64,000 bases of DNA, from assembly GCA_002269645.1 (NCBI GenBank), contig NIVC01002559.1, positions 62,001 through 126,000 on the forward strand. The letters run 5' to 3'. The translations under genes were made by a program, and so were the position numbers. This stretch comes from Macrostomum lignano. Lineage: Eukaryota. The notes under the pieces are model-generated. The model had not been told where the DNA came from. It was given only the letters and a program-made list of their open reading frames with translations, and made no database searches. Shown in pieces: positions 1,436 to 47,600 of this stretch; the stretch's first letter is position 1, and every line of letters starts with the position of its first letter.

Positions 1436-5595
<4,160 letters not shown>

Positions 5596-7640: not shown

Positions 7641-8158
7641 AGCCACTGGTTATCTACCAGATATTTACTAATTGTCTACGAGAAAACTACTAAGTGTCTA
7701 TTTTGTCTATCTGTTTCTTAAAACAGCTTCACCAGCTAACCCGTCTTATGGATTGAATTTTAGCGAGAACTTTTACGAATTTCACCTGCACTAGACAAAG
7801 GAGACAAATTTTCAAGTGTAAACTAATCACTAAAACAGTGATTTACTACCCCACTTTCTGTCAATTGGCCGCAGTTTTTATAACTTCCGGTAACGGTGCA
7901 CCAAATCTCATTATAATAATCAGCTCTGATCTGCACGCATCCAGTGCCTTCCGTTTGTTATATCTGTGTCTCTGTTGAGCTACATTTTTAACCAACACTC
8001 GCTTCCTGGAGAGCCGCTTTCGATAATTTTTTAACTGTTTTGATTAAATAGTTTTTTATCGTTCAATAAAGCTTAGTGAATGCTCACAAATGTCTATATA
8101 CTTACGAGTATTTTATTTACTCAGCTGTTTCAATAGCATCAGAGTTCGATCAGTTGAA

Positions 8159-22026: not shown

Positions 22027-22198
22027 GGCGATGCAGGGCTCAGGCGAGAAACGGGAGCGAAGCGAATGGCGGAACTCCCGGCCCTCCTATATATTCGGAA
22101 ATTTTTTAACGGGCTGGGACAGCCCCTTCTCTGTTCTTCGCTCCGGTACCTGTTAAGCTCGAGACAACACCTTGCGTTGAACTGCTGTCTGCCTGCCT

Positions 22199-22713: not shown

Positions 22714-23616
22714 TGGAACTCACAGAGCGACATGGAACTCACAGAGCTACATGGGGGAACTCACAGAGCTACATTGGGGACCTCACAGAGCTACATGGAA
22801 CTCACAGGGCTACATGAAACTCACAGAGCTATATGGAACTCACAGAGCTACATGGAACTCATAGAGCTACATGGGGGAACTCACAGAGCTACATGGAACT
22901 CACAGAGCTACATTGGGGAACTCACAGAGCTACATGGAACTCACAGAGCTACATTGGGGAACTCACAGAGCTACATGGAACTCACAGAGCTACATGGAAC
23001 TCACAGGGCTACATGGAACTCACAGGGCTACATGAAACTCACAGAGCTATATGGAACTCACAGAGCTACATGGAACTCATAGAGCTACATGGGGGAACTC
23101 ACAGAGCTACAAGGAACTCACAAAGCTACATTGGGGAACTCACAGAGCTACATGGAACTCACAGAGCTACATGGAACTCACAGAGCTACATGGAACTCAT
23201 AGAGGTACATGAAACTCATAGAGCTACATGGAACTCACAGAGCTACATGGAACTCACAGAGCTACATGGAACTCACAGAGCTACATGGAACTCACAGAGC
23301 TACATGGAACTCACAGGGCTACATGGAACTCATAGAGCTACATGGAACTCACAGAGCTACAAGGAACTCACAAAGCTACATTGGGGAACTCACAGAGCTA
23401 CATGGAACTCACAGAGCTACATGGAACTCACAGAGCTACATGGAACTCATAGAGGTACATGAAACTCATAGAGCTACATGGAACTCACAGAGCTACATGG
23501 AACTCACAGAGCTACATGGAACTCACAGAGCTACATGGAACTCACAGAGCTACATGGAACTCACAGGGCTACATGGAACTCATAGAGCTACATGGAACTC
23601 ACAGAGCTACATGGAA
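22714..23616. repeat. Minisatellite, 19-bp unit GGAACTCACAGAGCTACAT with block duplication
   Basis: Tandem array; explains ORFs at 22732-23667. Confidence 0.95.
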
Positions 23617-24296
23617 CCCAAAAGAAACTGCATGAAGCTTAAAGCTTTCATTAAACTAGGTAATTAAAAATTGAAATTCTGAAGCTCTTAAGGTTTTATC
23701 TGAAAAAAGCAAGAATAGTCTCGGGCTGAAATAATCCGAACCCATTGATAAAAAGTTGGTTGTTTCCAGACTTTTTAAAAACGAAACACAGAGTCCCCTG
23801 ACATCACGAATGCGCGGCGTCCCATTTCCTAGAGAATTACTAGTTAATTTTTTTCTAAGTAGACCAGCTACTCTCTTGGCTGACTACACTGCTCACCAAG
23901 TAAGGAAAAGTCAACATCCTCCTTAATCCGCATATTGGGTCTGACAGGGAATCCCATTTTTATGGTGACCAAGCATTGCTCAGATTTGTAAAAGTGCAAA
24001 CTGCTCTATCAATTATTATAACTTACAATTGGTAAGAAAAATAAAAACAAAAATGCCCTGAATAACTCAAACATTTATGAAGTTAAATAGATCGAAATTC
24101 GATTAGCTGATGATTTTATTTTAGACTGAAAAAAGCCTGTACCGGGCCATTAGACAGACAGCAAGAACGAAAGCTTTGTTTGAGAAATGTATAACTATAA
24201 GAAAAAAATTTCGGATAAACATTTGGATTAAAAATTGTGACACATTGCGCAAAATTAATTTTTATGACAGATTTTGAGACAGCAGTGACTTGAACT

Positions 24297-24830
24297 CATT
24301 ACAGACACTGGTTGTGGAGGACCTGACTGTCATTACAGACACTGGTTGTGGAGGACCTGACTGTCATTACAGACACTGGTTGTGGGGGACCTGACTGTCA
24401 TTACAGACACTGGTTGTGGGGGACCTGACTGTCATTACAGACACTGGTTGTGGGGGACCTGACTGTCATTACAGACACTGGTTGTGGGGGACCTGACTGT
24501 CATTACAGACACTGGTTGTGGAGGACCTGACTGTCATTACAGACACTGGTTGTGGGGGACCTGACTGTCATTACAGACACTGGTTGTGGAGGACCTGACT
24601 GTCATTACAGACACTGGTTGTGGAGGACCTGACTGTCATTACAGACACTGGTTGTGGGGGACCTGACTGTCATTACAGACACTGGTTGTGGGGGACCTGA
24701 CTGTCATTACAGACACTGGTTGTGGAGGACCTGACTGTCATTACAGACACTGGTTGTGGGGGACCTGACTGTCATTACAGACACTGGTTGTGGGGGACCT
24801 GACTGTCATTACAGACACTTGGTTGCAAGA
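24297..24830. repeat. Minisatellite, 34-bp unit TCATTACAGACACTGGTTGTGGAGGACCTGACTG
   Basis: Highly homogeneous tandem array. Confidence 0.96.
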
Positions 24831-25078: not shown

Positions 25079-28000
25079 TCACTCTGACAACCTGCTGCTG
25101 TCGGCCTTCAACATTCGCTGCAGCTTCTCCGCTGAATCAATCTTTTCTTCATCCTGAAAGTTTAGATGAAGATAAAAGATGGGATGAGTGATGAGATGAG
25201 TGGGTCAAGCGCAGGCTCTGATGTGCCAGCGGCCCGGGCTCGATTCCAAGTGCAGTCACATTGATCTGAGGCTAAATTGGAAACTCGGCTTGGCTCTGCT
25301 CGTGCAATGCAACGTGAAGTGTACATAGCAACTGGGCCAGCGCAAGGTTTGTGTCTCTTCTTAGCTCTCTTCTCTCTCCTTTCATATCTAATCTGATCTA
25401 TCCTCTCATCTTCTCTCTCGCCTCTCACCTCTTCTCTCATCGTCATAAACACAAACAGCCTGGATTAAACACTCGCACTAAGATCAACTCACCAGCTGAA
25501 GGAGGCGCTCGCACAGGGGAAACAGGTACATAACGGTGGCTTCATCGGGCACAGACTCAAGCAGCTGGGCCCGGACAGTCAGGCCAGTCTCTGGCCAGAC
25601 TCCCGAAGGCTGCATCAGTTCGCGCAGCCTCAGACCGGTATCGTGCTGCTCCTCCAGCAGGTGCAACACGCAGGCGCTCTGGCAGGCAGCCAGCGCAGGT
25701 CGCAGAGCCTGCGGAGCTCCGAATTGGTGCACCAGGCCGTCCAGCACGTCAGCATTGATGGCGGTTCTGTAGGGCCTCCTGGCGAGCTCGTGCCTGACCT
25801 GCTGGAACTGCAGACACAGGGCCTGCTGAGTCAGGCTGAGCAGCTTGGCAACGGTGAGACCGCCCGCGTCCGGCTCCGGCAGAGCCTCGGGCAGTTGCCA
25901 TGACAACGACGCAGAGGAGCTCATCAACGGGCTGCCACTCTGACAGTCGTTGGAGAACTCACGAATGGATCGTTGAAGGACACCTTCTGGCCAATGTTGA
26001 TCGCTCAGGTAGCGCAGGATGCTGATTGAGCAGTCTGTCAGCTTCCTGCATTGATGGCGGTTGGTTGGGGAAGCTGGCTTGAAGCTTCATCATTTAAGAG
26101 GATTAAAATTTTTGGTCTGTCTGAGACAGTTATAGGTCACTAACCGTCACTTAGAGTGGTTGTGGGGGTTCGAGGTTAGGTCTCTGGTTATTTAAGTGGG
26201 TCAAAGTAGGTCTTTTAGGAGCTTATATGCCTTCTAGGGCCCGTAATTGGGTTTCTAAAGGGCCATTTTTAGGTTTCTTAGCATTGGTCTAAGACTCTAA
26301 AATCCTGTTTTAAGAGGCAGGGGTTTTGTGCACCCTGGCGCACTTTAAGCGACATTGTCACACAACCGGCGAGAGGCAGTACTGCCCATTCCGCCGGCTC
26401 CCCTGAGCAGGCACACAAGCGCGCGGATACGTTAGGCATGTACACTTCACTGTGCCTTGTGGGTTGCAGAGCCAAGCCGAGATTCCAGTTTAGCCTCAAA
26501 TGAATGCGACTGCACTTGGAATCGAGCCTGGGCCGCTGGCACAGGTGACTACGGCAGGATCAGTACGGCATCAGGGATGTGAATTGTCAGATTCAAAAAC
26601 TCAGGATTCGCACCTGGCATAGGTGTGATCCTGCTCGTGCAGCTCTTTCAGCCTGGCCACTTCAGCTGTGCTCAGCACTTCGATGCCCTCGCCAGCCCGA
26701 TGTCTGAATCGGGTCATGAGCTCCACCGGCTGACGCTGCTGGTGGTCGCTGAACCGCGGCCTCCAGCTGGCTGGCGGGAGGGCCCAGCTGCGACCGACTG
26801 TGAGCAGGTGACCCAGGGCCGCGTCCAGCAGAGCCCAGTCCAGGTGTTCGCTGGCCTCGGACAGCCGCGGATCGCTCGGACCGGAGAACTGAGCAGCCAG
26901 CCGGTCCAGCTCGGCCTGCTCGAGGCTGACCAAGCCGCATCTGGCAGCGGTGACCGACCGGGCAGGCAGGGTGACTGAGCACTGGCCGGTGAGCAGGTGG
27001 CCGAGTCCGCCGCCCTGCAGAGCTACAGCAGAGGCAGCCAGTAGGAAGCTGTTCGCCAGTGGGCAGAGTTGAGTAGCCAAGTCAGCTAGTTTTGAGCCCT
27101 CGGTGAGCACAGTCTCACGCAGGTGGCTGTCAGCTGATGCGCAGTCAGGCATTCCGAGTTGGCGCAGACCAGTTTGAGCAGCTGGCCACAGCGCAGCCGC
27201 TGCTTGATCTTGCTTAATCACCTCGGCAACGGTGAGCCGCTCCCAGCCGGCTCTGCTCACCTGGCCGTCAAGCACTGACACGCACCTCCTGTGCCAATCC
27301 AGCACTTTGCTGAGGTGCGCCATTTTAATCAGCGCGTCTTGATGCGCCAGCACCGCTAGTGTGAGATCCAGCCTGCCAGCTGCTGAGGAACTGGTTGCCG
27401 GGCTCAGCTGGCGGCCCAGCCACAGGGTGCGGACGTGACAGGCGGTCGACCAGTCCACTTCAACAGCAGGCCGCAGCAGTTTCTCCGGCACCGACGGCTG
27501 CTCAGGCGGCAGGGCTGCGTCGAGTTGAGCGGCCAGAACGCGAGGATCGCCGGCCTGAGCAGTCGTCAAGCCTCGCTCAGCCAGCCGGCCGGCTTTGAAC
27601 TTGGCGACGCGCGCTCGCCGACAGAGCAGCAGCAGAGCGGCCGAGTGGAGCAGCGAGCCGGCGAACTGGGGGCACGGCTGCGAGGCGAACTGGTGCGCCA
27701 AGTCGCCAACCAGCTGCTGGCAGATCCAAGCCGGATCGTCCCAGTCCATGGCCAGCGCTGCGCGCATCTCCGAGAAGGCCTTGCCGATGAACTCGGAGAC
27801 TCGGCCGGGGTGTCCGAGCTCGGCGCACAGGTCGACGGCGGCCGAGACGCTTCCGGAGCTCAGGCAGAGCAGCACGGATGAGGCGCTCGCGGCCCAGCGG
27901 AGTAGCGAAGTCGGCAGTCGCGGGCAGTCGGTCGCCAAATCCGACGGCATCGTGACGGCTTCAAGCGGACCGGAAGAGCCGCAGAGCGGGCAGCGGCTGC

Positions 28001-31000
28001 TGGAGGAAGAGAACGAGGAGGCATTCTTGACGGCGACAACCGTGACGGCCAGACAGCGGGCGCAGCGGAGCGGATGAACTCCCGAAGTCAGCGGCAGCCT
28101 GGCGTCCAGCAGCAGCTTCAACTGTTTAGCAAATTCTCCGACTTTGCCGCCAGCGGCTAAGGTGGCGGCGCTGCCGAAGCGTCTTTGGCAGCCCAGCAGT
28201 TGAGCTGCTCCAGCCGACACCGCGGCAACCATGGAGCGGCCGAGCCAGTCGGCTCCGTTGTCCGGTGTCGCCTCTAGCCTGGGCTCATCTTCAACCAGGC
28301 GACTTCCCAGCAGCAGCCAGTCCAGCATGATGCGATCGGACTCCACGGAGGCTGCTGGGTTCGATTCTTCATCAATCAACAAGTCAACAAGCCGACTGTG
28401 CAGCAGACTGCCAACTCGCTGCTCTTCTGACGCAACCGGCTGTCGGTCCAGTTTTCTCAAAAACACCAGCTCAATCCAGGCGGCAATTATGGCATTGACG
28501 GACGAGCTCGAACAGTTGAGCAGTCGTTTCAAAGCTTCGGGACTGTCAGGAGCTTGAAGGAGGTCGTTCAAAGCCGAGCACACGGCGGCGTGGACTGTCT
28601 CTGAGGAGTCGGCTGAGTCAGGCAGCGGCAGGAAAGGCAGCGGCTGCCAGGAGCTGTCGGTGGCCTTCAGCGGCAGGCCGGCAGAGGTCAGGCACCTCAG
28701 GACGTCCATCAGCGGTGCCAGCCGTAGGCCGGCCTGAGCGAAGGCGACAACCAAAGGATGGCCCGGTCGGAAACCGCTGCCTAGGTCGCTTCGTAGCTGA
28801 TCAGCCAGCCTCTGTCCTTCATCGTTGAGTTGGAGTCGATTCTCGCTGAGAACGTATGACCGAGAGGCGGTCAGTTTGAAGCGGTGCAGACGGAGCAGGT
28901 CTGTCAGGCTCGGAGTCTGCGCGGAGGCGATGCTGTTCAGCGCTGCTAGCGGTGGCAGGCCAGCCAGCAGGGTCTGGGGAATGTGCGCGGCCACCAGCTG
29001 GGCCAGGTCCCGACCAGCCGGCATTCGCAGATGCTCGTCAACCCAGGCGGTGACGGCCGAGCAGGACGCGTCTTCGTCGGCTGCATTGTCGCCGCGACCA
29101 TTGTTGCTATGGACGGCTCGCCATAGCAACGAGAAGCAGCCGATTGGCAGCTGCTTTTCGGTCAGTTTCAACAGGAAAGCTTTCGCCAGCCCGGTTGTCA
29201 GTGCGCCACGTTCGATAGCCTGCTGCAGGTAGAGGCTCCACAGCGACTGCAGCTGCTGTTCCAGCTGGTCTTCGGGCACCGGGAGACCTTGCAGATCAGG
29301 CAGAGACTCCAGTAGAAGCTGCTCAATTCTGGCTACTCCGGACTCGCTGAACAAAGAGTCGGTGTTGCCCGTGTGCTCTGATAGAAAGCTCTGGACCCGG
29401 TGCAGACAGACAGCCGGCAAGCTGCAGGGGAGAGCCACCGTGGCAGCGAACAGGCGGCACATGCTGAGCTGCTCTGTGATTGGCTGAGGGCGGCAGGGGG
29501 TGGGAGAAGACAAGCTATATAAGCCCTAGTTTTGCTTTTCGAACAACCAATCCCAGGCCACAACTGGTCAGATAGGTAAGATCGGGTCAGAATACTGGGT
29601 CTCAGACCTTTAGAATTGAATTTTTATATTCAGATTCACACAGATCTCCGGTGTCTAGGGTTAAGACAATATCCAGGGTCGAGATCGATATGCAGGGTCG
29701 GGATCGATATGCAGGGTCGAGATCGATATCCAGGGTCGGGATCGATATCCAGGGTCGAGATCGATATCCAGGGTCGGGATCGATATCCAGGGTCGGGATC
29801 GATATCTAGGGTCGGGATCGATATCCACGGTCGGAATCGATATCTAAGGTCGGGATCTATATCTAGGGTCGGGATCGATATCCACGGTCGGAATCGTTAT
29901 CTAGGGTCGGGATCGATATCTAGGGTCGGGATCGATATCCACGGTCGGAATCGATATCTAAGGTCGGGATCTATATCTAGGGTCGGGATCGATATCCACG
30001 GTCGGAATCGTTATCTAGGGTCGGGATCTATATCTAGGGTCGGGATCGATATCCACGGTCGGAATCGTTATCTAGGGTCGGGATCGATATCTAGGGTCGG
30101 GATCGATATCTAGTGTCGGGATCGATATCTAGGGTCGAGACTGACAGCACCAAAGCTTAAAACACTTTTACCCCATGGCACATACATGTAGTGTGGGCTC
30201 CCCACCTGAGAGCTAACACCCGGAGCACAAGATCCAGTCCACTCACCAGCTGGGCGCACTCCGAGTCCGCAAGCACAAGCAGAGCCCTGGCGGCCAGACG
30301 GTCCCAGTCGGCCAGCGAGTCGGCCAGGCCGAGTTTCTGCAGGTTCTCGCTGCTCGGCAGCAGGCAGCCGGTCAGCCGTTCCGCCAGCTCGCCACGCTCG
30401 GTCGGCCCGTCCTCATCGTCACCGTCGAGCAGGTCTGCTGGGCAAAGTTCCGGCGATACCGACGTCAGAATCGCCCAGAGACGCAGGGCGGTTGCCATGG
30501 GAACAGCCAGGGCGATTGCCGACACCACGGGAGCCCAGCGGGTGCCGGCATCGGCGACTGCGGCAAGCGGCGTCATTGCCGTCAAGATGCTGTTGAACTG
30601 CTCCGACAGGTCGGTGCCGCAGGCGGACTCCGTTGCCATGGCGATGAGATCTCTAGCCAGCAAGTCGGCAGCTTCGGACCCCGGCGGCTGGTCTTCGTCG
30701 GCCAGTCCGAGCACCGACAGCCACGGCTTCAGCGCCGCGCAGGCCGCCTCGGCCGCGGCCTCCTGCGGCTCTTCGGCATCTTCGTCATCGTCGCCAGCGA
30801 CAGCCGCAGCTCCGGCAGGGCTGGCAGCTGCTGAAGCCGCGGCCTTCAGATCAGCGAACACGAAGCCGGACAGCGGGAACCGAAGTGGACCGCCGCTGCC
30901 GCCGCTGCCGATGTCGCCGAGGTCGACGCGGAGCCGCCGCGACTGCACCAGGTGGCCGAGGCCGCGCACCAGGCAGTCCAGCCTGCGCGGTTCCAAAGCG

Positions 31001-32523
31001 TCGCAGTCGAAGGCGCGGGCATCGCGAAGGAGCCGCAGCAGGTCCAGCAGGCTGGACTTGACGCGCCTGGCCAGGTGGTCGATGGCGAAATCGGCGAGGG
31101 TGGCGAATCTGGCCAGCTGGGCGGCCTCCCTGGCCAGGCCGACCATCCAGTGTCCCGGCGAGAACTCCGCAGCTTCGCCGTCGAGATCGTCGCCGCCGCA
31201 AAAGTCCTCTCTGGCAGCCCGCTTGATGGCAGCATCAATCAGAGCTTCGACAAGTCCACGCCGAGATCTGAGCAGTCGGGTGGCGGCTTCGAACCTGGGC
31301 CCCGGCTCCAGGGCCTCGAGCAGAGCGTCCTGCAGTTTTGGGAACGGGAGACTCGCGGCGTGATGTTGTGCTTATGAATCCCTAGCGTTAGTCTGTTAAC
31401 TTCCCGGGTGTGGGAAAGTGACACACATTGCTAGGAAAGTGACACACATTGCTAGGAAAGTGACACACATTGCTAGGAAAGGGACACACATTGCTAGGAA
31501 AGGGACACACATTGCTAGGAAAGTGACAAACATTGCTAGGAAAGGGACACACATTGCTAGGAAAGGGACACACATTGCTAGGAAAGTGACACACACTGCT
31601 AGGAAAGTGACACAAATTGGAAAGAAAGTGACACAAATTGGAAAGAAATTGACACAAATTGGAAAGAAAGTGACAAAAATTGGAAAGAAAGTGACACAAA
31701 TTGGAAAGAAAGTGACACACATTGCTAGGAAAGTGACACACATTGCTAGGAAAGTGACACAAATTGGAAAGAAAGTGACACAAATTGCTAGGAAAGTGAC
31801 ACAAATTGGAAAGAAAGTGACACAAATTGCTAGGAAAGTGACACAAACTGGAAAGAAAGTGACACAAATTGGAAAGAAAGTGACACAAATTGCTAGGAAA
31901 GTGACACACATTGCAACGAGCGCGCTTAAAACTCTGCTCAACTAACCTGCAGCCCGGCAGTGGCCCGGGTTCGAACCGCGGCCGGGCAGCGGTCGGTGAG
32001 CAGCTGCCTCGCGGAGCTGCTGCCCACCAGATCCCGCAGAGTGTCGGCCGAGCAGCCGTCCTCAGCCGCGCCCAGCGACTCCAGACAGAGCAGGCGCCAG
32101 TCCCGCAGCAACGGCGACCACTGCCAGGTCTGGCGGCCCCTCGAAGCGCCGCCGCCGCCGCCCAGGTGGAAAATCCACAGCAGAGCCGTCGGGCCCGCGC
32201 TGGCGGTCTCCATCAGCGACTCCAGCAGCCAGCGGAGCTGAGGCGCCGAGTCCGCGTCCACCGACGGCCGACAGCTCAGGGCGACGACGCCGCCAACTGA
32301 GTTGCGAATTGCCGCTGACAGCTCGTCTCTGCGCGATTGGTTGGGTGAGGAAAATGGTGCAGTCAGAGGGCGATTTTCCAGATGGTCAGAGGGTGATTTT
32401 CTAGATGGTCAGAGGGTGATTTTCTAGATGGTCAGAGGGTGATTTTCTAGATGGTCAGAGGGTGATTTTCTAGATGGTCAGAGGGTGATTTTCTAGATGG
32501 TCAGAGGGTGATTTTCTAGATGG

Positions 32524-32615
<92 letters not shown>

Positions 32616-35600
32616 TCAGCTCGTCCTCTCCCATAAAGTCAATCAGCCGGATGATGGAGCACTCGACGCCCAGCTGAAGCTTCCAGGCCGTGTCCTCCAT
32701 CCGGGTCCTGGTGTACACCACCGTCCCCCTGACGCCGCCTCTGCCAAGCTGTTCAGCCACGTGCCGAGCCAGGGAGGTGTCCGACAGCTCCTGGAAGTAT
32801 TGCCTCTGCAGGGCCTCGCGGCTCTCCGAAGGCAGTTCGCTGTGCGACAGGCGCAGCACAGCGTCCGGGAAGGCCTGAGTCAGCAGGTGCTGGGGCAGCC
32901 GGTTTGCCGTCTCCTCCACAGAGTCGTCGGCGCCAACCAGCAGGTGCGAGGCGGCCAGCTCAGGATGATAGCCGCAGAAAGTCTCTTGGGCGGCAAATTC
33001 AAGCTTTTCGTGCTCCTCCTGCCATGCTAGGCCGCTTATGCTGCGGATTGGCAGTTTTAGGTGGTTTTGGAAATGAAAAGGCTTAGCTTTCTACTGAAAG
33101 TAGAATGTAAGAGTGTTTTAACTCGATGCATGATGGGAAAAATCAGTTGCTATGGTATTTTCGTTGCTATCCGATCTCTGGGCCAAAACCAACTAACAAA
33201 AACTGTGGAATCCTTGTTGCTATGCTGTCTCTAGGCCAAAACCAGTTAACAAAAAACTGTAGTATCCTTGTTGCTATGCTGTCTCTATGCCAAAACCAGT
33301 AAACATAAACTGTGGAATCATTGTTGCTATGCTGTCTCTAGGCCAAAACCAGTAAACATAAACTGTGGAATCTTTGTTGCTACACTGTCTCTGGGCCAAA
33401 ACCAGTTAACATAAACTGTGGAATCATTGTTGCTATGCTGTCTCTGGGCCAAAGCCAGTTACCATAAACTGTGGTATCCTTGTTGCTATGCTGTCTCTAG
33501 GCCAAAACCAGTTAACATAAACTGTGGAATCATTTTTGCTATGCTGTCTCTGGACCAAAACCAGTTAACATAAACTGTGGTATCCTTGTTGCTATGCTGT
33601 CTCTAGGCCAAAACCAGTTACCATAAACTGTGGAATCCTTGTTGCTATTGATGTGGCCGCAGCCTTCTGCTGCAAGCATAGGGCCGCAGTCACATCTTAG
33701 GCACTGCTGTCCGCTGCCAGTATCTGGAATAGGAATTTTCTGCTGCCTCCATGTACTCTAAGCAGCCTTCCTTGGCGCTCAGAAGTTGCACAATATGGCG
33801 CAATCTTTAACATAGGAAATTAGGAAGTTTGCCTAGCCTAGGGTTAGTTAGTGGAAGCCGCCAAATTTGGCGCTTGCCTGTGCTATTGTTGCCTGGCCTG
33901 CCGCGTACAACCGCTCAGTGTACGCAAGTCTAGTTAGCCGCACTCCTCCCCCGTGCGCTCTCTGGACCCTTCCCCCTTCTGCTCTCTCGTTCCTCCTGCG
34001 TCCGAGCCTCTCCCCATGCGTCATTCTATTTTTAGACTGAGGGTTTCGCGGACCCCGTGTCCCGAGCTGAACCCTCCCTCACGTGCAGCCTTGTGCGCAC
34101 AAGCCCAAATTTGGCATGTTATTGTCACTAGTGGCTGGAGGCGACTGTCGGCGCTTCGTACAAGCTACTCTTTCCCCCATGTTTAATCAATATCTGTTGT
34201 GCATCATTATCCGCACTTTTCGGGCTGCAGTTCCATGGTCAAGCCACGGAATGCCCAAACGCTCCACCCTCCGCGTTCTATATTAACGAATGCAGGCCCG
34301 CTTGTCTGAATTTTTCCTCAGAACCGTTTTGACCGCTGGTCAGACTCGTTGAGAGCTATACTCAGCAACAGCTAAACCCCCCCCCCCAACTCACGCTGTC
34401 ACAGGGGCACAAAAGTTAAGCAATGTCTTTAAGTGGGTTGAGTTGCGCCACCCCCTCCCCAAATCCCCCATGCCGCACTTTGCGCTCGCGTCTGGCGGCG
34501 GCAGCCTTCACACATTTCTGAGTCACCGATGGCATACAAAACTTTTGGGCCGTGTGACAGCGTGAGTTGGGGGGGGGGTTTAGCTGTTGCTGAGTATATC
34601 TCCGAGAAAGCGCTCTAGCGCCGGTTAACAGCGAAGCAAAGCTCCTGAGCAGGTCTTGGTAGAGCATTGCTAGTGCTACAGCTCTGGTTTTCCAGCCTAC
34701 CCTATTGGCAGGAAATCAGTTGGCTGAAGCCATTCTGCTAGTGTCTATTCGCAACACAGGCGCGAATAAGAGTGAGAGTGAGTGTGCAGTCGCAGCACTC
34801 GTGCGCGATTCTAAGAAATAGCTGTTAGTTTATAGGCCTAGAGTCTATTGCTGCCGCAGGCGCATAGACCTATTTCCTCGCCGCCCATCTGTGCGAGACG
34901 TAGCTATTAGGTTAACAGGAGTTAGGGGTCCTCTGAGAGCTAAACTCAGACACGCTCAAGCGCGGACATTTGTCAGTGCCAGGACTGCGCCGCTCAGGCC
35001 ATTGCTACCATTGAGTCCTGTCACTTGGACATTGAAATATCTGAGACTAGTTGTTCTAGCGTTATTTATTTGCGTGGAGCCCAAACAGACCCCTTCATTG
35101 CGGATCCTACGGTTCCCACGCTGGTGGCAGCACTACCCTTAATTTTAGATTTCTCCCCAGTCTCAGCCCCCATAAGTATACTCAGCAAGGTTGCTTCGGG
35201 TAATAGCAGTCCACCCCGCCACAGAAACCAGAAAGCCAAGCACTACACTGGTGATAGCGGTGGGATATCAAACCTGCCGAACCACCCCAACAACTGAAGT
35301 ATATCATTGGTGGCAGCGGTGGGATTCGAGTAACAACACCTAGCCCGAGCAGCCAAAAGCTCAGTTACTACACTATGCTGTCTCTAGGCCAACCCAGTTA
35401 ACCTAAATTGTAGAATTCTCGTTGCTATTCTGTCTCTAGGCCAAAACCAGTTAACTTAAACTGTGGTATCTTTGTTGCTATGCTGTCTCTAGGTCAAAAA
35501 AGACTCTCTAACCCTATTACGAGTTGCTAAGACTAAGAGCAGTTTTAAGATAAAAAGTCTAAAATGGTAACAACTTTATTTGACTTAATTATTTGCTAAT

Positions 35601-38600
35601 CACCTGGTCGCCTTAGCAACAAAACTGTCCCGAAGCTGTTCAACCGCGCCACGCTGCTCTGCGGACAGAACGTCGCCAAATCCGAACGTTTGCTTCTCGA
35701 AACGGTTGAGAAAGGCTCTGTCCACGCGCTCCAGAGTGTCCGCCCTCACGAGCACTACGCAGCGGAACTTGTCATCAACGGAGCAATTCTTGTTAGCTTG
35801 CGTTCCCATAGCAACGCGGCAGTAGCGACGCTGGTTATACTCGGAGTAGTTTTGGTTGAGCATGTCGTACAAACTGCCGTAGACGAGTTCAAAGTCCTTG
35901 AACAGCACAACAATGCCGTTCTCCATGCACATCATCACTTCATGCAGTTTTCTCAGCGCGAACTGCTCGCTGAGCTGGTCCCTGTCGTATGCGCTGCCGT
36001 GAAGCACTCGGAACGGGCGCTCCTTCCGCTGAAGCACATGGGCCAGCAGGTCAAGATCCCGGTCAGTGTCCGTGATCAGCATCAAGTGCCGCGCGCTCTT
36101 GTCCTCTAGGCTCTCCATGAGCACCGATACCTAGGGGACGGTTAGTTAGCGAGTTACGAGCGTAGATCATGGATCACGTTAAGCTTCCGCACATCAGCCT
36201 TGACCTTCTACTAACCGTCAGGCATGTCAGGCTAACCTCAAGCACGTGGAGGTTCGGTCCCGATTTCTCTACGCCAACCCCTTTTATTTGGAGCAAAATT
36301 GCGCCTGATATGCCGAAAACCCGGGGGGGGGAGGGAATGGTTGTGAGGGAGTCTCACAGTCTCATTATGTCCTCCATCAAGGCAGGGTAACATAATGAGA
36401 GCTGGTGTGGGGGGTAACATAATCATCATTAATAGATAACATAATGGGGGCATAAAGTAACATTACTATCGCTCCTGCTCTTCATACAAACATATAAAAA
36501 GAGCGTTCTTCGTGGTCATCACGTCCCGTTAGCATTTGACGCTTCAAATGAAGGGATTGGCGTAGAGAAACCGGGACCGAATGTTTCGGGCTCCATTTTG
36601 ACTCTTAAGTTCACATCCCCTTTAAGTGCACAAGCCCTAAATGAATGAGCTTGGCGCAAGAATAAGATGTGCAAGACCCATACAAAAATCCGTGATAATT
36701 GATTTGGGAAAACAAGAGAATTCAAATGCAAACCTTGTCTTGTTGACGAAGTGTTTCCTTGTAAGCATTTTCCAGTCCCTCGTAAGCGAAGTCAAAATGT
36801 TCGAGAAAGTACGGCTGCTCCAGACCGGAGAAGTTCCTCACCAAGCCGCGACTGAGTATAGCCAACTTGTTCAACTGCATTCGAACATTTTCTTTAGCGA
36901 GAAACTTCACCAGGTAATAGTAGTCTCTGAGCCCGTGGAAATCCTCTTCTACTTGGCTGTCGAAGTATTCGTGACACGCTTGAGCAATTTTTTGCATATC
37001 TTCTTTGTCGATTCGACCGCCAACCTCGCCCTGACCGTCTTGCTTGTCCTGCTGCAGAACAATGGCACTGCCTGTGATGAGCAGCTCCTCGGTTGTCATA
37101 TCCGGCCTGGAGATGTGCACAGCTCGGTTCATCTTGGCCGGGTCCAGGGCCCAGTTGGACAAGCCCAGTACGGCAACACGAGCTTTGCAGGTGAATTCCG
37201 ACTCTTCAGGCTCTAGGAGGCTGTGCAGAACTTTGAGCGGGTTGTGACGCGACTTCTCCGCTAGACCGATCTCGTCTAGCAGGACTACATAGCTGCGAGG
37301 AGAGGGAGGTGAACCAGTGTAAGAATGCATCTCGGATGTATTGTTAGGTCACAACTCATCATAAACCTCGTATGTAATGCCACTAGACCATCACTGATGA
37401 TTGATTAAGCATCCCGGATTCAATACTAATTCGTCACTGATCATTGATCAAACACTGATGCCATTCATCATGATTCAGTACTGAAGCATCCCGGATGTAA
37501 TACTAGGCCATGGCCATCACTGATCATTGATCAATCACTGATGCCATTCACCAATAATCATAAATTAAGCATCCCGGATGCAATACTAAGCCGTCACTGA
37601 TTAAGAATCCTGGATATAACACTATGCCATCATTAACATCCATTCCGGACGTGATGCTCAATCATCTATCATTCCGGACGTGATACTAGACCATCGTGCC
37701 TACCAGATGTAATGGCATCTTCATCCTTCAAATTGTGTTTTTAATGAAGTTAGTTTTTAAAGGAAAGGAAGTTTTCAAACGGGTTTTTTAGTTAGAGGTA
37801 GGGGCTGTGTGCACCCTGGCGCACTTCAAGCGACATTGTCACACAGCCGGCGAGAGGCATCACTGCCCGTTCCGCCGACTCCCCTGAGCAGCGCACACAA
37901 GCGCAAGGATACGTACGCAGACATACGCACAGGCACACAGTCACAAAGGAGTGTACAGCGGCGGTGTTTATTGCACGAGCAGACCCAAGCCGAGATTCCA
38001 ATTTAGCCCCAAATTAATGTGTCTGCATTTTGAATGCATAATCGAGACTGGACGAATGGCGCATACATCGGTGGCTAGACCGCTAAGCTACGCCCCATCA
38101 AAGAACAGAGAGAGCTAAGCAGTACACGTATGTCAAGGGAATTTACCGATACTCATCCTTTTCCGCATCCTCATCAGCTTTCTTCGTGGCTCTGCGGAAC
38201 ACTTTGAAGATGCCCTCCGAAGTGGACGCCTCGGAGCCCTGGTAGCAGAAAAACCTCAGGGCTGGCAGAGCTTTGAAGAACGGATCGCGTGAGTCCCGAC
38301 CTCGCAAATTGCTTCTGAGCAGAGAGACGGCCAGACTCTTGGAGCAGCCAGGCTTGCCAACTAGGAACACCGGAACTTTGTTGTAAACGCAGCACAGCAG
38401 GATAAACACGTTCTCTAGCAGGGCCGCGTTTTGAGCCACATTTTCCGGCAGCTCCATTCGATTGAGAATGTCTTCCTGCTCCTCGCGTATTGTTTTCTGT
38501 ATTGACACAGCAGATTATGTACATGTACGCGTGTAATTAGCCATAAATCTACATGCACCAGTGCTCACTGACAACTCGGGTACCAAAAAGGGCATTTACA

Positions 38601-41600
38601 TGGTTATGTAAATTTAGGAGAAGCTAACTGTACCAGATGGGGTCAGAAACGTATAAAAGCTGATAATCAAGCTTACCTCAGCATTGTCAGACAGGAGAGA
38701 CAAAATTTCGCAAGCGTATTCGGTTCGCTTGTCTGCAGACCGGATGCGCACATAGTAGCACACGTACAAAGACATGACCAGAGGCAGAGTCGATAAACTT
38801 CGATATACATCGCTTTTCTCATGCCTCAGTTCGTAGAACCAATCGAAGAAGGCGATGAACTCGCAGCATCGGCGAACATCTCGCAAGCTGATTGCGTACT
38901 CAGTTTTCTCCAGCTTTCGAATGAATTTCTGGGACTTCCACACCGCATCGGCTAGCGCGTTCAGCAGAACCGACTCCATCTCCGGCAGCTGGTCTCGCAG
39001 CATCCGCTTGATGTACTGCTCCTCATCGGTGTCCCGCAGCCGGCCAAAGTCCCACACCAGGTCCAGAATGGACTCGGGCAGCGGGTTGACCCGGTACACC
39101 AGGTGGCGCATGCGGTCATGCTCGCGTTCGGCTAAGCGGAAGCCGGCAGTCAGAGCGGCATCCGGGTCTCTCAGCCTGTAGGGATTCGAAGCGGCCAAGA
39201 ATCGCAGGTTGGGCGGCAGCGGAGCACCTAGTAGTCGCCTGTGACATATGAGCTCCTTCAGCATGCCCAGGTGATCGCAGGTGTTAATCTCGTCGAGAAA
39301 CAGCCAAACAGTTTTTGTGTCGCGGATCTTATCGCTTGTTTTGCGTTTAATAATCAGTTCCCTGGCCTCCTCGGCGGCAGACTGGGCAGTATGGATAATT
39401 TGCTCCTGCGTGGTGCCCGCGTGGAAGTTCAGCACGCGGAGGCTGGCCTCGTGTACCTGAGTTAAGTAGAAAGATATTTGCGTAAAGCAGGGGTCGGCGA
39501 ACCCCGGCCCGTGGGCCACATGCGACCCGCGAAGCCTCTCTATCCGGCCCTCGGGTCCTTTGAAACTTATAATAGCGATCAGGCCCGCTCAAAGTGTGTG
39601 TCACGTCAGTTCTCTCGGATCACCTATCCTCTCTCCTTTCTTTCCTCCCTACTCTCATCGCTCCCCTCTCCCTCCTCTCCTCTCTCCTTTCTTCTCCTTT
39701 CTTCTCCCTTCTCTCCTCTCTTCCCTCTCTCTCCTCCTCTCTCCTTTCTTTCTCTCCCTTCTCTCCTCTTTTCCCTTTCTCCCTCTCTCCTTTCTTTCTC
39801 TCCCTTCTCTCCTCTCTTCCATCTCCTCTCTCCTTTCTCTCATCTCTTCTCTCCTCTCTTCTCTCCTCTTCCCTCTCCCCTCTCCTCTCCCTCTCTCCTC
39901 TCTCCCTTCTTCTCTCTCTTCTCTCAAATTTATTCCTTCTCCTTTCCACTCTCATTTTTCCCGCAACAACGAGCTGGATTTTTTTCTGGCCCTTGAGGAA
40001 GAAATGAAAAAACAGACAACTATGACTAAATATAGATTCTGTAACCGCCATAAAATCCCACAGCTGATTAGCAAGCGTTACAGCATTGCATATAAATCAT
40101 ACTGGCTTACTTTGCTCAAGAATCTGATCAGGCTAGTCTTTCCGCATCCGGTCTCTCCGATGATGAGCACCGGCACGTCGCAGTCGATTCGCAGGCTGAT
40201 CAGCACCATCTTGAGAAAGTTGTCAGCCGTGATGGCGTATCTTCCGCTGCCGCCGCTTGGCTCGTCGTCCTCATCAAATTGCACTCCAGGCGGCCGGTAG
40301 CCAGGGTTTCCGCGGCCAGCGATGCGTACCAGCTTCTCCAGCAGCTTGGCCTGCTTCATCTCAGTGTAGTCAACCAGCCGGCCGCTGTGCATGTTTCGCT
40401 CGAATAGTCGCCGGATTTCGTCAGGTACATCGCGGAGACTGCGGTAGACCAATTCGACAGCGGCAATGTCCTGCTTCTGAAACACGGGCGCCAGGTGGTT
40501 AAACGATTCCCAGCTGAGGAAGCCCTCGAATCGTTCAACGGAATCATCCGTGACCTTGGCGTGCACGCCGCGCTTCGACTCTGATTGCTTGCCTTTGGAA
40601 AGAGCAACAGATCGGCTCATGAGCTGACAAATGGACTTAAACAGAAACCGAACTAAGTCGGATCGAATTGTTGGCGAAGCATCGCGACCGAACGCTTCTC
40701 TGACGCCGGAGATTTTGAAAAACGCGCTCGAAGACAGCTTCTTCAATTGGTCAGCTAGAACACGAATCGTGGACGTAACAGTCAGGTAGGAATGACCTTC
40801 GAGCGGAGCCAGAGCTTTCTGCAGCCTAGAGCGACACTCGTCAGCTTCCAGTACGCTTTCTAACGAAACTTCAACCGAATCTAAATTTCGCAAATCCAAA
40901 GCTCGCTGATACTTAGCAACTATCTGCACCGGACTTTTTGGCTCGCGTGATACCATCAGGTCGTTAAGACATCGCCACTGAAGTATCGTCACATTCTGTT
41001 CAGAGAGGCGGTTAAACAAAACGAACTGTTCCGCAAGCTCGTCATTGGCACTGTTTGCCAGCTCAATGACAACTCGGCCAGGTTTGAACGCCAGCAGATA
41101 GCTGGAGTGGCACAGCATCCCGGTGAGCAGCGCCTCAAACAGCATGGTTTCTAGAGCGCCTGCGTCATCGATCCAACCAACATCCAGATGTAGGAGGTCA
41201 CGCTGCTCTAGGCCGCTTAATTTCTCCGCTAAATCGAGCTTGCCGATCTTGCCGCTGACGTGAACGCAGCGCAGGCGGCTCTCAGTGTCAGCGGCCAGCC
41301 TGCGCACCAGCTCGGTCTTGCCGCATCCAGCCCGCTCAGACCGGACAAGTGTCACAGAGTCGCCGCAGATCGCGTCCAGGGCTGCGGAAAGTTGCAAGTC
41401 CGAGTCAAAAACGGGCTGCTGTTGCTGGCATTGGTCTCTGAAGATTCCAAGTAGACGATGTGTGCTAGCAGCTCTGCAGAATACTGCTAGACGGCCTAGG
41501 TTGCCTGCATCGCAGAGGCCTAGAATGCTAGCAGCCAGGTGGTTGAGCAGCCGCTGACTGAGCAGTTCGGTGCAAAGAATGTAGTGCACTCGGCTGGGGC

Positions 41601-44600
41601 TGCTAGCGCTTCGCTGAAGCAGCAGTGAAATCTCCTCCTCGGCGGTGTCAGCAGAGCAAAACAGAATCTCCGACGGTAACGGTGAATGAGTCTGTAAAGG
41701 CGAAAAAAGAATAACTGGGTTTTCAAAATTCGGAAAGCCCCGGCGAAAACGGTACCTAAGTCAAGAAGCGTCCCAGAGTCACGTGCGTCACCCCAGAGTC
41801 GTTGCAGGCAACATAGGCAAAGTAGAAAAGAAGTGACTCTAGAAGACCCTAATATGACAAGATATCACAGTACAAGTCGCCAAAAAAGTTGTCAAAAAGT
41901 CACTTAAGAGTCAATTTGAGGCGTTATATTGTTTGCGACTCTGAAACGATTCTGGGACGACGCAAGTAACTCTGGGGCGCTTCTAGGCACTTCTGAGGCA
42001 TTCTAGAGTCGTTGTAGAATCAATGAATTGCGTCTAAAGCGCATCTGCGTCATTAACATTGCATTTCGTTTTTACGAGTATAACTATTGAGGCTACTTGA
42101 GTCAGTAGAAATTTGAGAGCTGTAACACATTTGGAGATACTTTCATGACTCTTACGACTTTACATCCTTTGTGATGGACTCGTAACTCAACAGTCAACTT
42201 TCCTTCGCATTACGGTCGTTTGAGTCTTTAAAAAGCCACAAAACTCGCCCAGAGTCACTAGTGAGCTGTTTGCAATGACTAGCGATTCCTGTCACGATAA
42301 GTTTTTCAACGGGAGCTTGAGCTAACGTCCTAATGCAAATTTGCCAACTCACCTGAGACTGCCGCCACACAGTAAGGAACGCTCTAATAGAGTGCGGCTC
42401 TTTGCTGGGATCAACGCGTAAAACCATCAATCGGCCTCGTTGAACACACAGTGGCGATTCGGGGAGCTGTTGAGCGCAATCGAGTTGGCGGTCGGGAAGG
42501 GCAGGCAATTGAGACAGCCAATCAGCGAGCGCTATCATATGTTCCCGTAGGATATCTTTCTGCCCTGTTGGGCCTAATTTTCTCACTTTGTCGACGTTGA
42601 ATCCGAGGTGCGGCATATTGCCATACTGCTGCAGCCTTTGTGCATCTCGGTTAACAAATAAAAGTATTGGCCGTATATGTTGATCTGGCACATTGGTTTC
42701 GGTTAGAAAGTGGTGCATTCTGAGCAGGTTTGCGCCGAATAAGTGGTTTAATAGAGGCCTTTTCTGTCTTGCCTCGCTTAGGACAGATTCCCATATTTCT
42801 AAATTACGGCGAAACTTTGCCTCTCGATCTGCCAGTTTTTTAGCCGAGCGTTTTTTGTCGGCTTCGAAGTGAAGTGGATGACCGACTGATTGCAGTTTCG
42901 TATGCAATTGGAACACCTGGGAAGAAAAGTGCAGGTTTTTCCTCTTAAATTTTACATAAATAGGTAATCCTGGTAAATTAAAATTATAAAAACTTACCCT
43001 TTCAAGAGAGTCGATCAGGTCGACAAATATTTTTAACTTCCTCCGATCATCGTCAGTGACGAGAGAGTACGAAGAGCCTACGATCATTAACACGCGGCAT
43101 CGATGGTCAATCAGCTTTGACAGTGGCCAATGTTCGTCACATGTAGCATCGAATAACTCGCAAGTAGATTTAGACTCACAAATTCCAATTGAAAACATAA
43201 GATCATCTTCATCCATGCACTCAACCAAAGCTAGAGCTTGTTTTCTTGAAGAGTCACCTCGAGAGGACAAACTATCGTGCAGATTCTGAATAGCTACAAG
43301 ATGACTAAAGCAAGTCTCAATACATTCCACGGCATCCTTAGCTCGGGCGTCGGAGACAGTCTGATCCGAGCCCTCGAGGCCAATGTTAAGAGCCATTGCC
43401 AGTTCTTCCATGCTTGTCTTCATTCCCAACATGCCTTCTCCTGAATTGATCTTGTGAATTAGCATTCGGAGCATTTCCTGCAGCTTGATGAGGGCATTGA
43501 TGTGAGCAAAGCTCACCTCTTCTGAATCTTCGTCATTGGCGGCGTCGAACAACTGCTGAAAGTCTGAGTTAACCTGAGCTATCAAGAATTTGAATACATT
43601 AGTTCGCTCACAAAGATTTGTTAGGATGTTCCAGTGATTTTTTGACAGTGGCTTGCACAGCTTTACTAAAACTTTTGCGGCCTCATTGAAATCTGTTACA
43701 AAGCTTCCGCCTCGACATTTCCTAAAATATTTCTCACAAACAGCTAGCACGGAGGGCTCAAACAAATGTTGCAGTGGTGACTGCAAGAGCAGCTGGCAGT
43801 AGTGCTTCCATGTCTTTCGGTACTTCAAATTTTCAACCAGCTCCTTGTCTGATAAAGCTGGTGACTGATAACCGAGAAACTGCTGAGCCAAATCTTGCTC
43901 CAATTCAATGTCTGTCTTTGGAGAAAACTTTTTCTTGACATCCGCAACGTTTTCATGCTTTAAACTTCGTTGTAGAAACTGTTTGTAGCGATCAATAACA
44001 TCCCTGAGAACATCAAATACTTCGGCAACAGTATAGGCCCCCTGGTCCAGTGAGTAAATCTCAGTGAATATGGTGGATTCAAGAAGGCCGCTCAGATCAC
44101 GAGCAGTTTTGGCGTACCCTTGAAATACTTTCCCTAGAAAGTTCGTTGCCTTCATCAGCGAAATTTTGTCTTCAACTTCCGCTGACGTTTTCTTAAACCT
44201 TGCCTGGTAATCTGAAATGTCATTCAAATAAACTCGAGTCGAAAGCCACTCGAGTATTTTCGTGCCAATTTGAACGTCGCCTTTGTAACTGGCCAGAGTT
44301 TGTTCCATTTTAGAAACAAGGCTTCGTGTTGGCTCACTAGTTGGCAGTCGACAAGCACGAAGAAACTGGTCCACTTGGTTCCAATACTCATCGCTAGTAA
44401 ATTTTTTTCGAAGGACTTCAAATTGAGATACTGTGAGCTCCATGGCTTCCAACTTCTTCACCCAGTCTGTTATTGACTGCATAGCATCGCTTCTAATGAC
44501 GCCACGGATTTCTTCAGTAAGTTGGTCTTCAGATTCAAGCCAGCACCATGCCTTAGGGAACTTTAGAATTGTCAAAATCCTGTCCTCTGGTTGATTTGAC

Positions 44601-47600
44601 TGTTTAGGCGCACGCTTCGTAACTAAGTGGAGAAACAGCTGCTGTTGTAGGTCTTTCGCAGTCCTAAAATATTTAGGTGAGAGTAGAGTTTAAAAAATCA
44701 ATATTTATGGGGTTGCGCTTTAAAGCAAAAACAGAGGACAAATTAGCAACGCAAAATTAATTTACCTGTCAGAACGCAGACTTTTGCACAGCATGAGGTC
44801 AACTCTCAGTAGAAAATCGTCTACTTGTCCACTTGGATTCGCATGCTGCTGTTGCAAGTGATGCAAGCAGCTCCGGTACAGAGCAACACACTGTTCATAG
44901 ATATCGGATTCTATCGACAAATTCTGCAGATCATTCCAAATTGGTTCTAGAAACTCCTTTGTTAGTGAGCCCTGATTGAGAGCATACCGACCAAATGCTT
45001 CTAGCCACAGCTGCTTTAGTGCGCTTCTTTCAGACACTTCGTCAATTTGCCGCTGCAAAGTCGCAATAATGCTACTGCCTGATTCCTTGTTGTGTCGTCG
45101 CTTTAGATCCAGTAGCATCAAAGCTTTGCAGAAAACCGGGACAAGAGCTTCATTCTGAGGCAACTGTAGAGCCAGTTCAATCGCTTTTAGCTTATTCAGA
45201 CGCTCTGCTAAAAATGTCTTTAGTTTAGGAGACTGCTTTAATTCAAATACACCGCTGACAACAGCAATAGCCTCGTCTGGACTCGAAATGAATCTGCATT
45301 CGTTGAGAAATCTTTCTACCGAATTTTGAAACTCTTCGCTGGCCTGCATTGGGGAATCAACCGTAAGAGTTTTCATGCAAGCATTTTTGACGGCCTCAAA
45401 TGCCTTAGCTCTCATTTCGTCAGGCATTTCGCACGCATCCATCAAGTCACTAAGCTGCTGCCAATCACGAACACCAAGTCGCAGGTGGTTGTCACGTCCC
45501 GCCTCCTCGAGAATCAACGCTAGTGCTTTCTCTCGAATCTTTGATTCGAGCTCCGATTTGACAGGCGATTCTTGGATTTGAGACACTGCTGCAAGTACAC
45601 CACCCACATCCTTTAATCGCTTAATTTCCGGTAAGAGCTTGCTGGAATCCAATTCTTTGCCAGCCTTCAAATATATGCTGATTTTGTACGGCAGTGCCAT
45701 AGCATCCATAGCTTTCTGGTTAGTAAAAATAGCATCGAAGATTGCAGATTTTTCAGGAAAGCGGTCCAAAAAATTGTGGATCACTTGGTAGCTTGAACGA
45801 AAGGAGAAATCCTTCAAGTTGGTGAGCAATGCAACGAAACCAGACGGATTTTCGCTGACAGCTTGCGTCATAGTGTTAACCAGTTTTGAATCAGCAACAC
45901 TTAAGGCCTTAAGAAGGACGGGTGTAAATGGCAGTGCCTTTCGGCCATAATTCTTTAGCTGCTCTTTTGCGATCTCGTTAGCTTTCAGTAGCATGCAGAT
46001 GTAAAGCACGCAAGCTGACTCACGGAGCATCGGTAGATAGCCGCTTAGGAAGCCATTTATGTGCTCGTTAAGACAATGCGTGAGCATATCGGCTGAAGCG
46101 GCAATGTTGTCTGCCTTTTTTCTACTCGAAAAGCCCTTCGCAGTTTCATCAATCAGTTTTTCTAAGAACATCAAGCATGAATTTATGTCCACGAGTGCAA
46201 AGTCGCTACTCAAGTTTAGCGCGCATGCCGTCAGATGGTTAGCAAAAAAACTCCAGAAGACGTAAGAGTTCGGTAAAAATTGATGACAGTAGCCAAAGCA
46301 AATGAACTGCAAGGACGGTTCAGGTTTCATTGAAACAAACCGTGATTTCTCTTGAATTTCTGTACCTTCTCTGTGTTCCTTAACTATAAGAAAGCCGTTT
46401 TTAAAGCATCTTTGAAATTCTAAAACGAAGAGGCTAGACTGAAATATTGGCTGATTAAACTGGTTGTATGGCAGCCACAGTCGAATTTTCAGCTCAAAAC
46501 CTTTGATAGAATTATCGGTGTAGAAGCAAATTATCACCGAGCGCACAAAAGTTTCTATATCAATTGAAAAGTATCTTTCCGGTAGTAGATTCGCTCCAAC
46601 CCAAAGTTGGCCATTTATGCCCTGCAGCATAGCGTACTCATGCTCTAATGGCTTTTGCTTCTGAGAAAGATTAAAAAACTGGGCAAGCTGAATGCTGAAA
46701 ACTTGTTTCGTCTGAAAAGGAAAACATCGGATAGAAAATATGTAGCAATGGAATTATGCACTCAATGTGAAATCTTTTTTTACTTAATTTGGCTTAAAGA
46801 AGAAATAAATATTCTCTGATATCGTATCTGTCAACGAAAATTACACTATGGTGAACTTTAGTTAGTTTAGTCTTTTTAGTGTGGTGCTGGGAGTGCTGAG
46901 CTCTAGGCACTGCAGTGGCTAACTAACTTACTGATATTATGTACGTGTAGCGGCAACAGGCATTCTTTTTGCCCTGTCTGCCCGTACCCTTCCATGTAAG
47001 TAGTAGTTGTCATCACGTAACCTTTTTTGTAATTATATCAGCCCCCTGCTCATTTTATCATTAAAAAACTATTAGCAAGATAAAATACATCTAAGAATTT
47101 TTATCAACTGCGCTCGTATACGGTACGATATTATTCTAATTTAGCTCATTTTTAGAGCCATTGGCTATGTAATCGTAATGTATAGAAATTCAAAACTAGA
47201 CTATTTACTCGCAATAACCGAAATACAAAACGAAAGAAATTAGCTGAATTGCAAAAATCAATCCAAATAACTTACATAGCCTGCTTGCGCTTCAACGGGC
47301 AATTGCTCATATTCTTCGATCCAGAGGACCTAAAAGTGAGAATTTAGTATTATTCAAGCATCTTTAAAAAGATTCAAAGATTTTGTTAAACTTTTGTTAA
47401 ACCATAAAGTCACTCTGTACACTGTCTAGACCTTAGGAATGATATTCATAATAAAGTCCTAAGTTAGGTCTACATATAACGGGCTCTTATTGCGATATAG
47501 TTTTCGATTGCGCGATTTAGTCCAGCAAATTATCTTTTCTACATCAACTTTTCTGTCTTTTGACCTTTCCGTTGAAAAATATGCAACTAAACAATTCTGG

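Follow-up and report, generated by a model that had tools for sequence, protein, structure and literature searches.

Human RNF213 (mysterin) is an immune and Moyamoya-disease protein that uses zinc fingers to attach ubiquitin. In a stretch of 64,000 nucleotides from the flatworm Macrostomum lignano (assembly GCA_002269645.1, contig NIVC01002559.1, positions 62,001 to 126,000; hereafter the window, with positions counted from its first letter), we find a multi-exon gene on the minus strand, running from ~46.7 kb to ~25.5 kb, which is a member of the RNF213 family and a true relative of human RNF213, and whose 3' half carries neither the RZ finger nor the RING. The C-terminal region of the predicted protein contains instead a four-cysteine element, CARC-x20-CPLC(G). 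We put at about 0.5 the probability that this element is a structural C4 zinc ribbon occupying the RZ slot, either a decayed remnant of the RZ finger or its replacement, in a protein without the known RNF213 ligase mechanism.

The family assignment comes from the 5' part of the gene, in which the following exons and motifs were located.
35606..46753, minus strand: N-arm and AAA-core exons of the RNF213-family gene.
40135..40158, minus strand: Walker A of the first active AAA module, GETGCGKT.
39289-39306, minus strand: Walker B of the first active AAA module, WLFLDE.
38335..38358, minus strand: Walker A of the second active AAA module, GKPGCSKS.
37271-37288, minus strand: Walker B of the second active AAA module, VVLLDE.

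By phmmer against PDB sequences, the Walker A exon matched mouse and human RNF213 (E 4e-14), with midasin a weaker match, the exon that follows it matched RNF213 at E 1.5e-25, and worm residues 1328-1912 aligned with human RNF213 2727-3316 over ~590 residues at E 5e-69. These significant matches across the AAA core identify the gene as an RNF213 homologue, as an earlier note on this DNA, made from the sequence alone, had proposed. The core is dynein-like, and in both of its catalytically competent modules Walker A and Walker B are intact and align with the RNF213 motifs.

The 3' half of the gene comprises the following exons and features.
30247..33042, minus strand: GC-rich exons 33042-32614, 32330-31947 and 31335-30247, three in all, which follow the AAA ring and precede the large exon.
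26613..29501, minus strand: large exon of 963 codons, GC 0.64, holding the ribbon and most of the putative E3-shell and C-terminal domain (CTD) region.
25493..26047, minus strand: last exon, joined in frame to the large exon; stop at 25487-25489, after …LLQLVS.
27861..28076, minus strand: peptide quoted in the earlier note (HPLRCARC...SVLLCL).
27981..28064, minus strand: four-cysteine element CARC-x20-CPLC(G), a putative C4 zinc ribbon.

The quoted peptide is real. Positions 26604-29525 on the minus strand form one stop-free stretch of 974 codons, whose translation holds the peptide exactly as quoted, with the CxxC-x20-CxxC spacing as written. The donor of the large exon is CAG/GTGCGA at ~26612. 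An independent public gene model from M. lignano, UniProt A0A1I8JA77 (UniRef100_A0A1I8JA77), covers the gene and presents the ribbon region as one continuous exon with an identical peptide. Over the large exon, model and window differ by 3 substitutions and 4 small indel or frameshift patches, so the model represents the same gene in another assembly or haplotype.

The absence of an RZ finger, which the earlier note had suggested, was borne out by profile searches. PF20173 (RZ; gathering cut-off 27 bits) gave no match on the large exon, on the whole protein or on an 87-residue ribbon peptide, the last even at E ≤ 10. Likewise, no RING family in Pfam matched the worm protein, and none matched the ribbon peptide at E ≤ 10. 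As positive controls, the human RZ peptide scored 76.9 bits against PF20173 (E 8.7e-22) and the human RING matched six RING families. A six-frame scan of the whole 64-kb window found neither the RZ patterns (CPxGH, CxxC..GGxxH and a loose version of the full motif) nor a RING, for which a generous pattern was used; the one CPVGH, at 26950-26964, falls outside the coding frame and was rejected as off-frame noise, not an RZ finger. No in-frame Cys/His cluster was found besides the four-cysteine element, no homology or RING was detected in the three GC-rich exons by Pfam or by pattern and Cys-His scans, and from 25.0 to 38.6 kb no non-exonic minus-strand stretch of 30 residues or longer matched any Pfam family. 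Because the scans of exons, introns and frames were all negative, an intron of this locus that conceals an exon for the RZ finger, a possibility that the earlier note had raised against itself, is ruled out, and so is one that conceals a RING exon. The missing RING is an additional result, going beyond the missing RZ finger of that note.

The four-cysteine element has the spacing C-x2-C-x20-C-x2-C. The RNF213-like protein, 3,564 residues long, has no CxxC sites other than its two knuckles, which lie 24 residues apart; on shuffling, a CxxC-x8-30-CxxC arrangement arose in 2.4% of cases for the whole protein and in 1.2% for its C-terminal 1,652 residues. The second knuckle is a classical CPxCG, and in the 20-residue spacer a Ser-rich loop comes after a beta-branched run (LAVTVVAV). 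CARC-x20-CPLCG thus shows the ligand pattern of C4 zinc ribbons, namely two CxxC ~15-25 residues apart with a CPxCG knuckle. An AlphaFold2 (AF2) model of the ribbon peptide, made without an alignment, placed strands and a hairpin around the first knuckle at a predicted local distance difference test score (pLDDT) of 50-65.

In the RZ finger, the metal is held by C4505, H4509, C4525 and C4528, and catalysis proceeds via C4516 as nucleophile and H4537 as general base (PMC11549300). The worm element lacks the His ligand and has no Cys between the knuckles (LAVTVVAVKNASSFSSSSSR) and no His after them (GSSGPLEAVTMPSDLATD), so the RZ nucleophile and general base are without counterparts. The earlier reading of the ribbon as lacking the catalytic Cys and His is therefore upheld, and the converse possibility, an RZ finger with its catalytic residues retained, falls away. 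The element thus lacks every defining RZ feature except the second C-x2-C.

The position of the element was compared with human RNF213, for which the sequence of residues 3993-5207 was corrected against PDB chains 9G08, 8S24 and 6TAY. The human landmarks named in the earlier note proved real in this check, with TMPED at 4482-4486, CPNGH at 4505, the RZ finger spanning C4505-H4537 and CDRGLPP at 4570. The worm motifs that the note had paired with them are the following.
27939..27953, minus strand: TMPSD, the upstream anchor (human TMPED), a match statistically indistinguishable from chance.
27912..27929, minus strand: DCPRLP, the downstream anchor (human CDRGLPP), equivalent by position alone.

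From DCPRLP to the C-terminus there are 615 residues in the worm protein, and from CDRGLPP 637 in the human one; DCPRLP may mark the start of the CTD. The distance from the Walker lysine of the second module (AAA4) to the finger is 1,527 residues in the worm, compared with 1,730 to the RZ finger and 1,222 to the RING in human, and the distance from the finger to the C-terminus is ~635 residues, compared with ~680-700 from the human RZ finger and ~1,170 from the RING. Taken together, the distances to the Walker lysine and to the C-terminus favour the RZ slot.

Demonstrable homology to RNF213 ends at about worm residue 1912, and the remaining 1,652 residues have no detectable similarity. For this C-terminal region, Pfam returned nothing and phmmer against PDB sequences found no match. 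The large exon had no match in a word-indexed database of 5.8 billion proteins, and among 1.84 billion cluster representatives its sole match was its own gene model, A0A1I8JA77. An AAA query of protein databases retrieved five fragments and a human RZ peptide query two tiny ones; since these homologue searches found the gene's own model or fragments, no family alignment could be built. Direct comparison was equally negative. At maximum sensitivity, phmmer of human 3993-5207 against worm 1900-3564 produced no alignment even at E 1000; the Smith-Waterman score of the two C-terminal regions was 49, within the noise of shuffled sequences (45.6 ± 4.7); a block-wise z-score matrix of the two showed no collinear diagonal; and a two-sequence hidden Markov model of a conserved CTD motif, built from human and mussel, gave no signal in the worm. 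The alignment with human RNF213 that the earlier note had called for is thus sound for the AAA core and fails for the C-terminal region, where the E3 shell and CTD agree with the human protein in lengths and order alone, with no sequence signal and a poor AF2 model.

The loss of homology coincides with a steep shift in GC content and residue composition along the gene. GC is 0.43-0.44 in the N-arm exons and 0.51-0.56 in the AAA exons, and reaches 0.62-0.72 in the last five exons (33042-25493); over the same three groups, A+L+S+R+G+P make up 39-41%, 38-49% and 47-64% of residues (54-64% in the last four exons). The GC content of third codon positions rises to 0.86 within the gene (25493-46753, minus strand). 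The 3' ~1,650 codons have drifted to a GC-rich, Ala/Leu/Ser/Arg-rich composition. An open frame of 974 codons in DNA of ~60-64% GC speaks for continuing selection to translate the region.

The reading that we favour for the four-cysteine element is as follows. It would be a small structural C4 zinc ribbon, predicted to bind zinc, lying in the linker just before the CTD, where the human RZ finger lies too, and ~635 residues from the C-terminus (~680-700 in human). Most simply, it would be a decayed RZ remnant or its replacement, and we lean slightly towards a finger that decayed in place over a new insertion, because the former needs one event and the latter two. Such a ribbon would be unable to perform E2-to-E3 transthiolation of the RZ type, and with no RING for E2 activation either, the protein would possess neither known RNF213 ligase mechanism. 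It would probably serve as an ATP-driven scaffold or sensor, or depend on a partner ligase.

Several observations weigh against this reading. The best Pfam match of the ribbon peptide, zf-Sec23_Sec24, is itself a zinc ribbon and so fits the reading, but it is sub-threshold (14 bits against a cut-off of 25, E 0.054). Both AF2 models, each made without an alignment, are of low confidence (pLDDT 40.8 for the large exon and a mean of 49.2 for the ribbon peptide). Foldseek on the ribbon model returned nothing below E 2.5; in favour of a ribbon, the non-significant list consists mostly of chains that carry C4 zinc ribbons. The four cysteines are seen in one species, M. lignano. The C-terminal 1,650 residues align with no RNF213, which makes the RZ slot an argument from length and order. 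Finally, the TMPSD/TMPED match, if genuine, places the ribbon N-terminal of the RZ insertion point.

This last observation leads to the strongest of the alternatives, in which a clean deletion between TMPSD and DCPRLP removed the RZ finger together with its linkers (human ~4490-4569) and the ribbon is an unrelated insertion ~10 residues upstream, as the earlier note had supposed. TMPEDL and TMPSDL are identical at 5 of 6 residues, near the expected collinear position. In the worm the spacing from helix to TMPSD exceeds that of human or mussel by ~55 residues, which is what an insertion would produce, and in the mussel relative described below an F-I/L-P-x-M motif is followed within ~20 residues by a putative first CTD helix, with no finger between them by eye. 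The statistics of the anchors speak the other way. Between the C-terminal regions, 6-mer matches of the quality of TMPEDL/TMPSDL numbered 20, with 15.4 expected by chance; at least one match of that quality appeared in the local neighbourhood in 17% of shuffles; and the gapped local alignment around the anchors was equalled or beaten by 13 of 300 shuffles. Three-way MAFFT alignment of human, mussel and worm gave three different answers across modes, one of which set worm CPLC on RZ C4525/C4528 and worm EAVT on human DVVT; being unstable, it was not used as evidence. A clean deletion also demands two events, a loss and a gain, within ~40 residues, compared with one for decay in place. A precise excision thus hangs on two short motifs without statistical support, and we regard this account as unlikely, if less so than any other rival. 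As to the earlier claim of a new ribbon upstream of a deletion, the four-cysteine element is present, and a new ribbon at that place is not distinguishable from an RZ finger decayed there. Overall, the earlier interpretation is partly supported.

The four cysteines might instead have come together by chance in a region that is GC-rich, of low complexity and quick to evolve, binding no metal and serving no specific role. The surrounding composition is biased (A+L+S+R+G+P = 58%), a Ser run lies between the knuckles, the AF2 confidence is low, the shuffling probability, at 1-2%, is small but not vanishing, and the motif was picked post hoc. Against this stand the uniqueness and proximity of the two CxxC sites in the protein, the canonical CPxCG of the second knuckle, and a position that coincides with the family's finger slot. 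We consider chance improbable.

The closest AAA relative that could be retrieved is a Mytilus edulis 'RNF213' fragment (locus CAJPWZ010002387.1:209601-231360). This locus shares 27-49% identity with the worm protein in blocks over worm 537-1781, and its CTD is recognisably that of RNF213 (E 1.4e-6 to human 4883-4984). No RING, RZ or CxxC pair was found in any of its frames. The mussel gene (9.2-19 kb of the locus) is nearly intron-free, is annotated as five separate genes and shifts reading frame every few hundred codons; the locus may be a pseudogene, perhaps retro-copied, or the product of an error-prone assembly. A relative that lacks both fingers while its CTD is recognisable counts in favour of the reading that we prefer for the worm gene. 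It also makes finger loss in the worm less surprising, and finger-less members of the RNF213 family may not be rare. Domain loss in divergent invertebrate members may indeed be not very surprising, perhaps ordinary. A literature search found no paper on RNF213 domain loss in flatworms or other invertebrates. One could go further and take finger-less RNF213 for a conserved lophotrochozoan lineage, an ATP-driven chassis without RING or RZ chemistry, in which the ribbon is a repurposed partner-binding module in the RZ slot; it would then catalyse no transfer, and its partner might be ubiquitin-charged E2 (E2~Ub), a different ligase or a ligand of microbial origin. We hold this to be a long shot; if true, a conserved finger-less lineage would imply an ancestral RNF213 function independent of ligase activity.

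Less probable still is that the ribbon, or another C-terminal part, might be a new catalytic or substrate-binding effector, leaving the protein a ligase with a mechanism unlike that of RING or RZ. The ATPase motifs are intact, and a long open frame has been kept despite divergence, 974 stop-free codons at ~60-64% GC being no chance event; however, there is no candidate nucleophile near the ribbon and, by Pfam, no similarity to any ligase family.

The idea that the four cysteines are what is left of the RNF213 RING, namely its C-terminal half (human H4014-x2-C4017-x2-C4020...C4032-P-x-C4035), brought beside the CTD by loss of the E3 shell, can be given very little credence: GVHPLRCARCL (28047-28076, minus strand) does resemble human HVHCLRCLRAW (4013-4024), with VHCLRC(LRAW) against VHPLRC(ARCL), and CPLCGSSGPLE resembles human CPYCLTALPDE, but the match is 1 of 20 such 6-mers, with 15 expected, and is probably fortuitous, no RING family is found in Pfam even at E ≤ 10, the lengths misfit and would need ~540 residues lost downstream and ~300 gained upstream, and in a RING the ligand pairs 5/6 and 7/8 are not parts of one zinc site.

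The gene is already in public databases, as an uncharacterised predicted protein, and several features of that model were noted. At ~27590-27665 on the minus strand (exon residues 621-645), ~75 residues downstream of the ribbon, a compensated frameshift distinguishes the window from the public protein (FAGSLLHSAALLLLCRRARVAKFKAG and FRRLAAPLGRSAAALSVERASPTG, respectively); the cause is an indel error in assembly or else genuine haplotype variation where constraint is weak. Residues 3565-4020 of A0A1I8JA77 (window 19361-22086, minus strand) form an Srw-like seven-transmembrane receptor (PF10324, E 9.5e-8). The model joins the RNF213-like gene to this downstream G-protein-coupled receptor (GPCR) via CTG/GTGAGT, just before the in-frame stop at 25487-25489, and the fusion is probably a chimeric prediction from two genes. 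At the other end, window 42197-46753 (minus strand) has stop-free stretches of 831 and 663 codons, far more N-arm sequence than the model uses, and A0A1I8JA77 skips in-frame N-arm segments there. Neither the model nor the N-terminal stretches of the window gave a Pfam match in support of the UniProt name 'CARD domain-containing protein', which was rejected.

The locus is dense in minisatellites, with periods of 19-53 bp and up to 89 copies, which yield long spurious open frames such as the CHFPSNL repeats at 31391-32212. They are distributed as follows.
29669-30137, 31413-31914, 32362-32523 and 33163-33648: minisatellites in introns of the RNF213-like gene.
243-1037, 1685-2388, 2995-5217, 6087-7663 and 10284-11133: other minisatellites.
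22714-23617, 24296-24825 and 47756-48037: further minisatellites.

Elsewhere in the window, positions 60055-61071 on the plus strand hold an intronless open frame of 339 codons encoding a rhodopsin-family GPCR (PF00001, E 1.5e-38).

The known cellular activities of mammalian RNF213, namely ubiquitylation of bacterial lipopolysaccharide, bacterial coat formation and autoubiquitylation, depend on the RZ finger (PMC11549300). A natural member that retains an apparently working ATPase core and lacks RZ and RING alike would provide a separation-of-function variant ready to use. From it one could learn what the AAA chassis and the C-terminal scaffold accomplish alone, and whether an older machine acquired the ligase fingers as add-ons.

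Among known systems, the Mytilus edulis locus resembles the worm gene in being finger-less, yet it lacks the CxxC pair and its C-terminus has no detectable similarity to that of the worm. Generic C4 zinc ribbons, such as the Sec23/Sec24 finger (PF04810), the MCM N-terminal zinc finger and RPB12, share with the worm element the CxxC-x~20-CPxCG arrangement and the beta hairpin predicted at the first knuckle, but all scores are sub-threshold (14 bits vs 25; Foldseek E > 2) and common descent is unsupported. Like the RZ finger of RNF213 and ZNFX1 (PF20173), the worm element is a two-knuckle metal-ligand motif with a second C-x2-C, lying just N-terminal to a putative CTD. Its first knuckle, however, is C-x2-C and not C-P-x-G-H, its knuckles are 20 and not 15 residues apart, and the nucleophilic Cys, the His of GGxxH and any hidden Markov model signal are all missing. 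Human and mouse RNF213 (Q63HN8; PDB 8S24, 9G08, 6TAX) have both a RING (C3HC4) and an RZ finger, whereas the worm protein has neither, and the E3 module and CTD are unrecognisable by sequence in the latter. In its overall plan the worm protein nevertheless matches them: it is a giant with an N-arm and an RNF213-type AAA ring, the Walker A and B motifs of AAA3 and AAA4 are conserved, and 1,652 residues follow the ring, compared with 1,891 in human RNF213.

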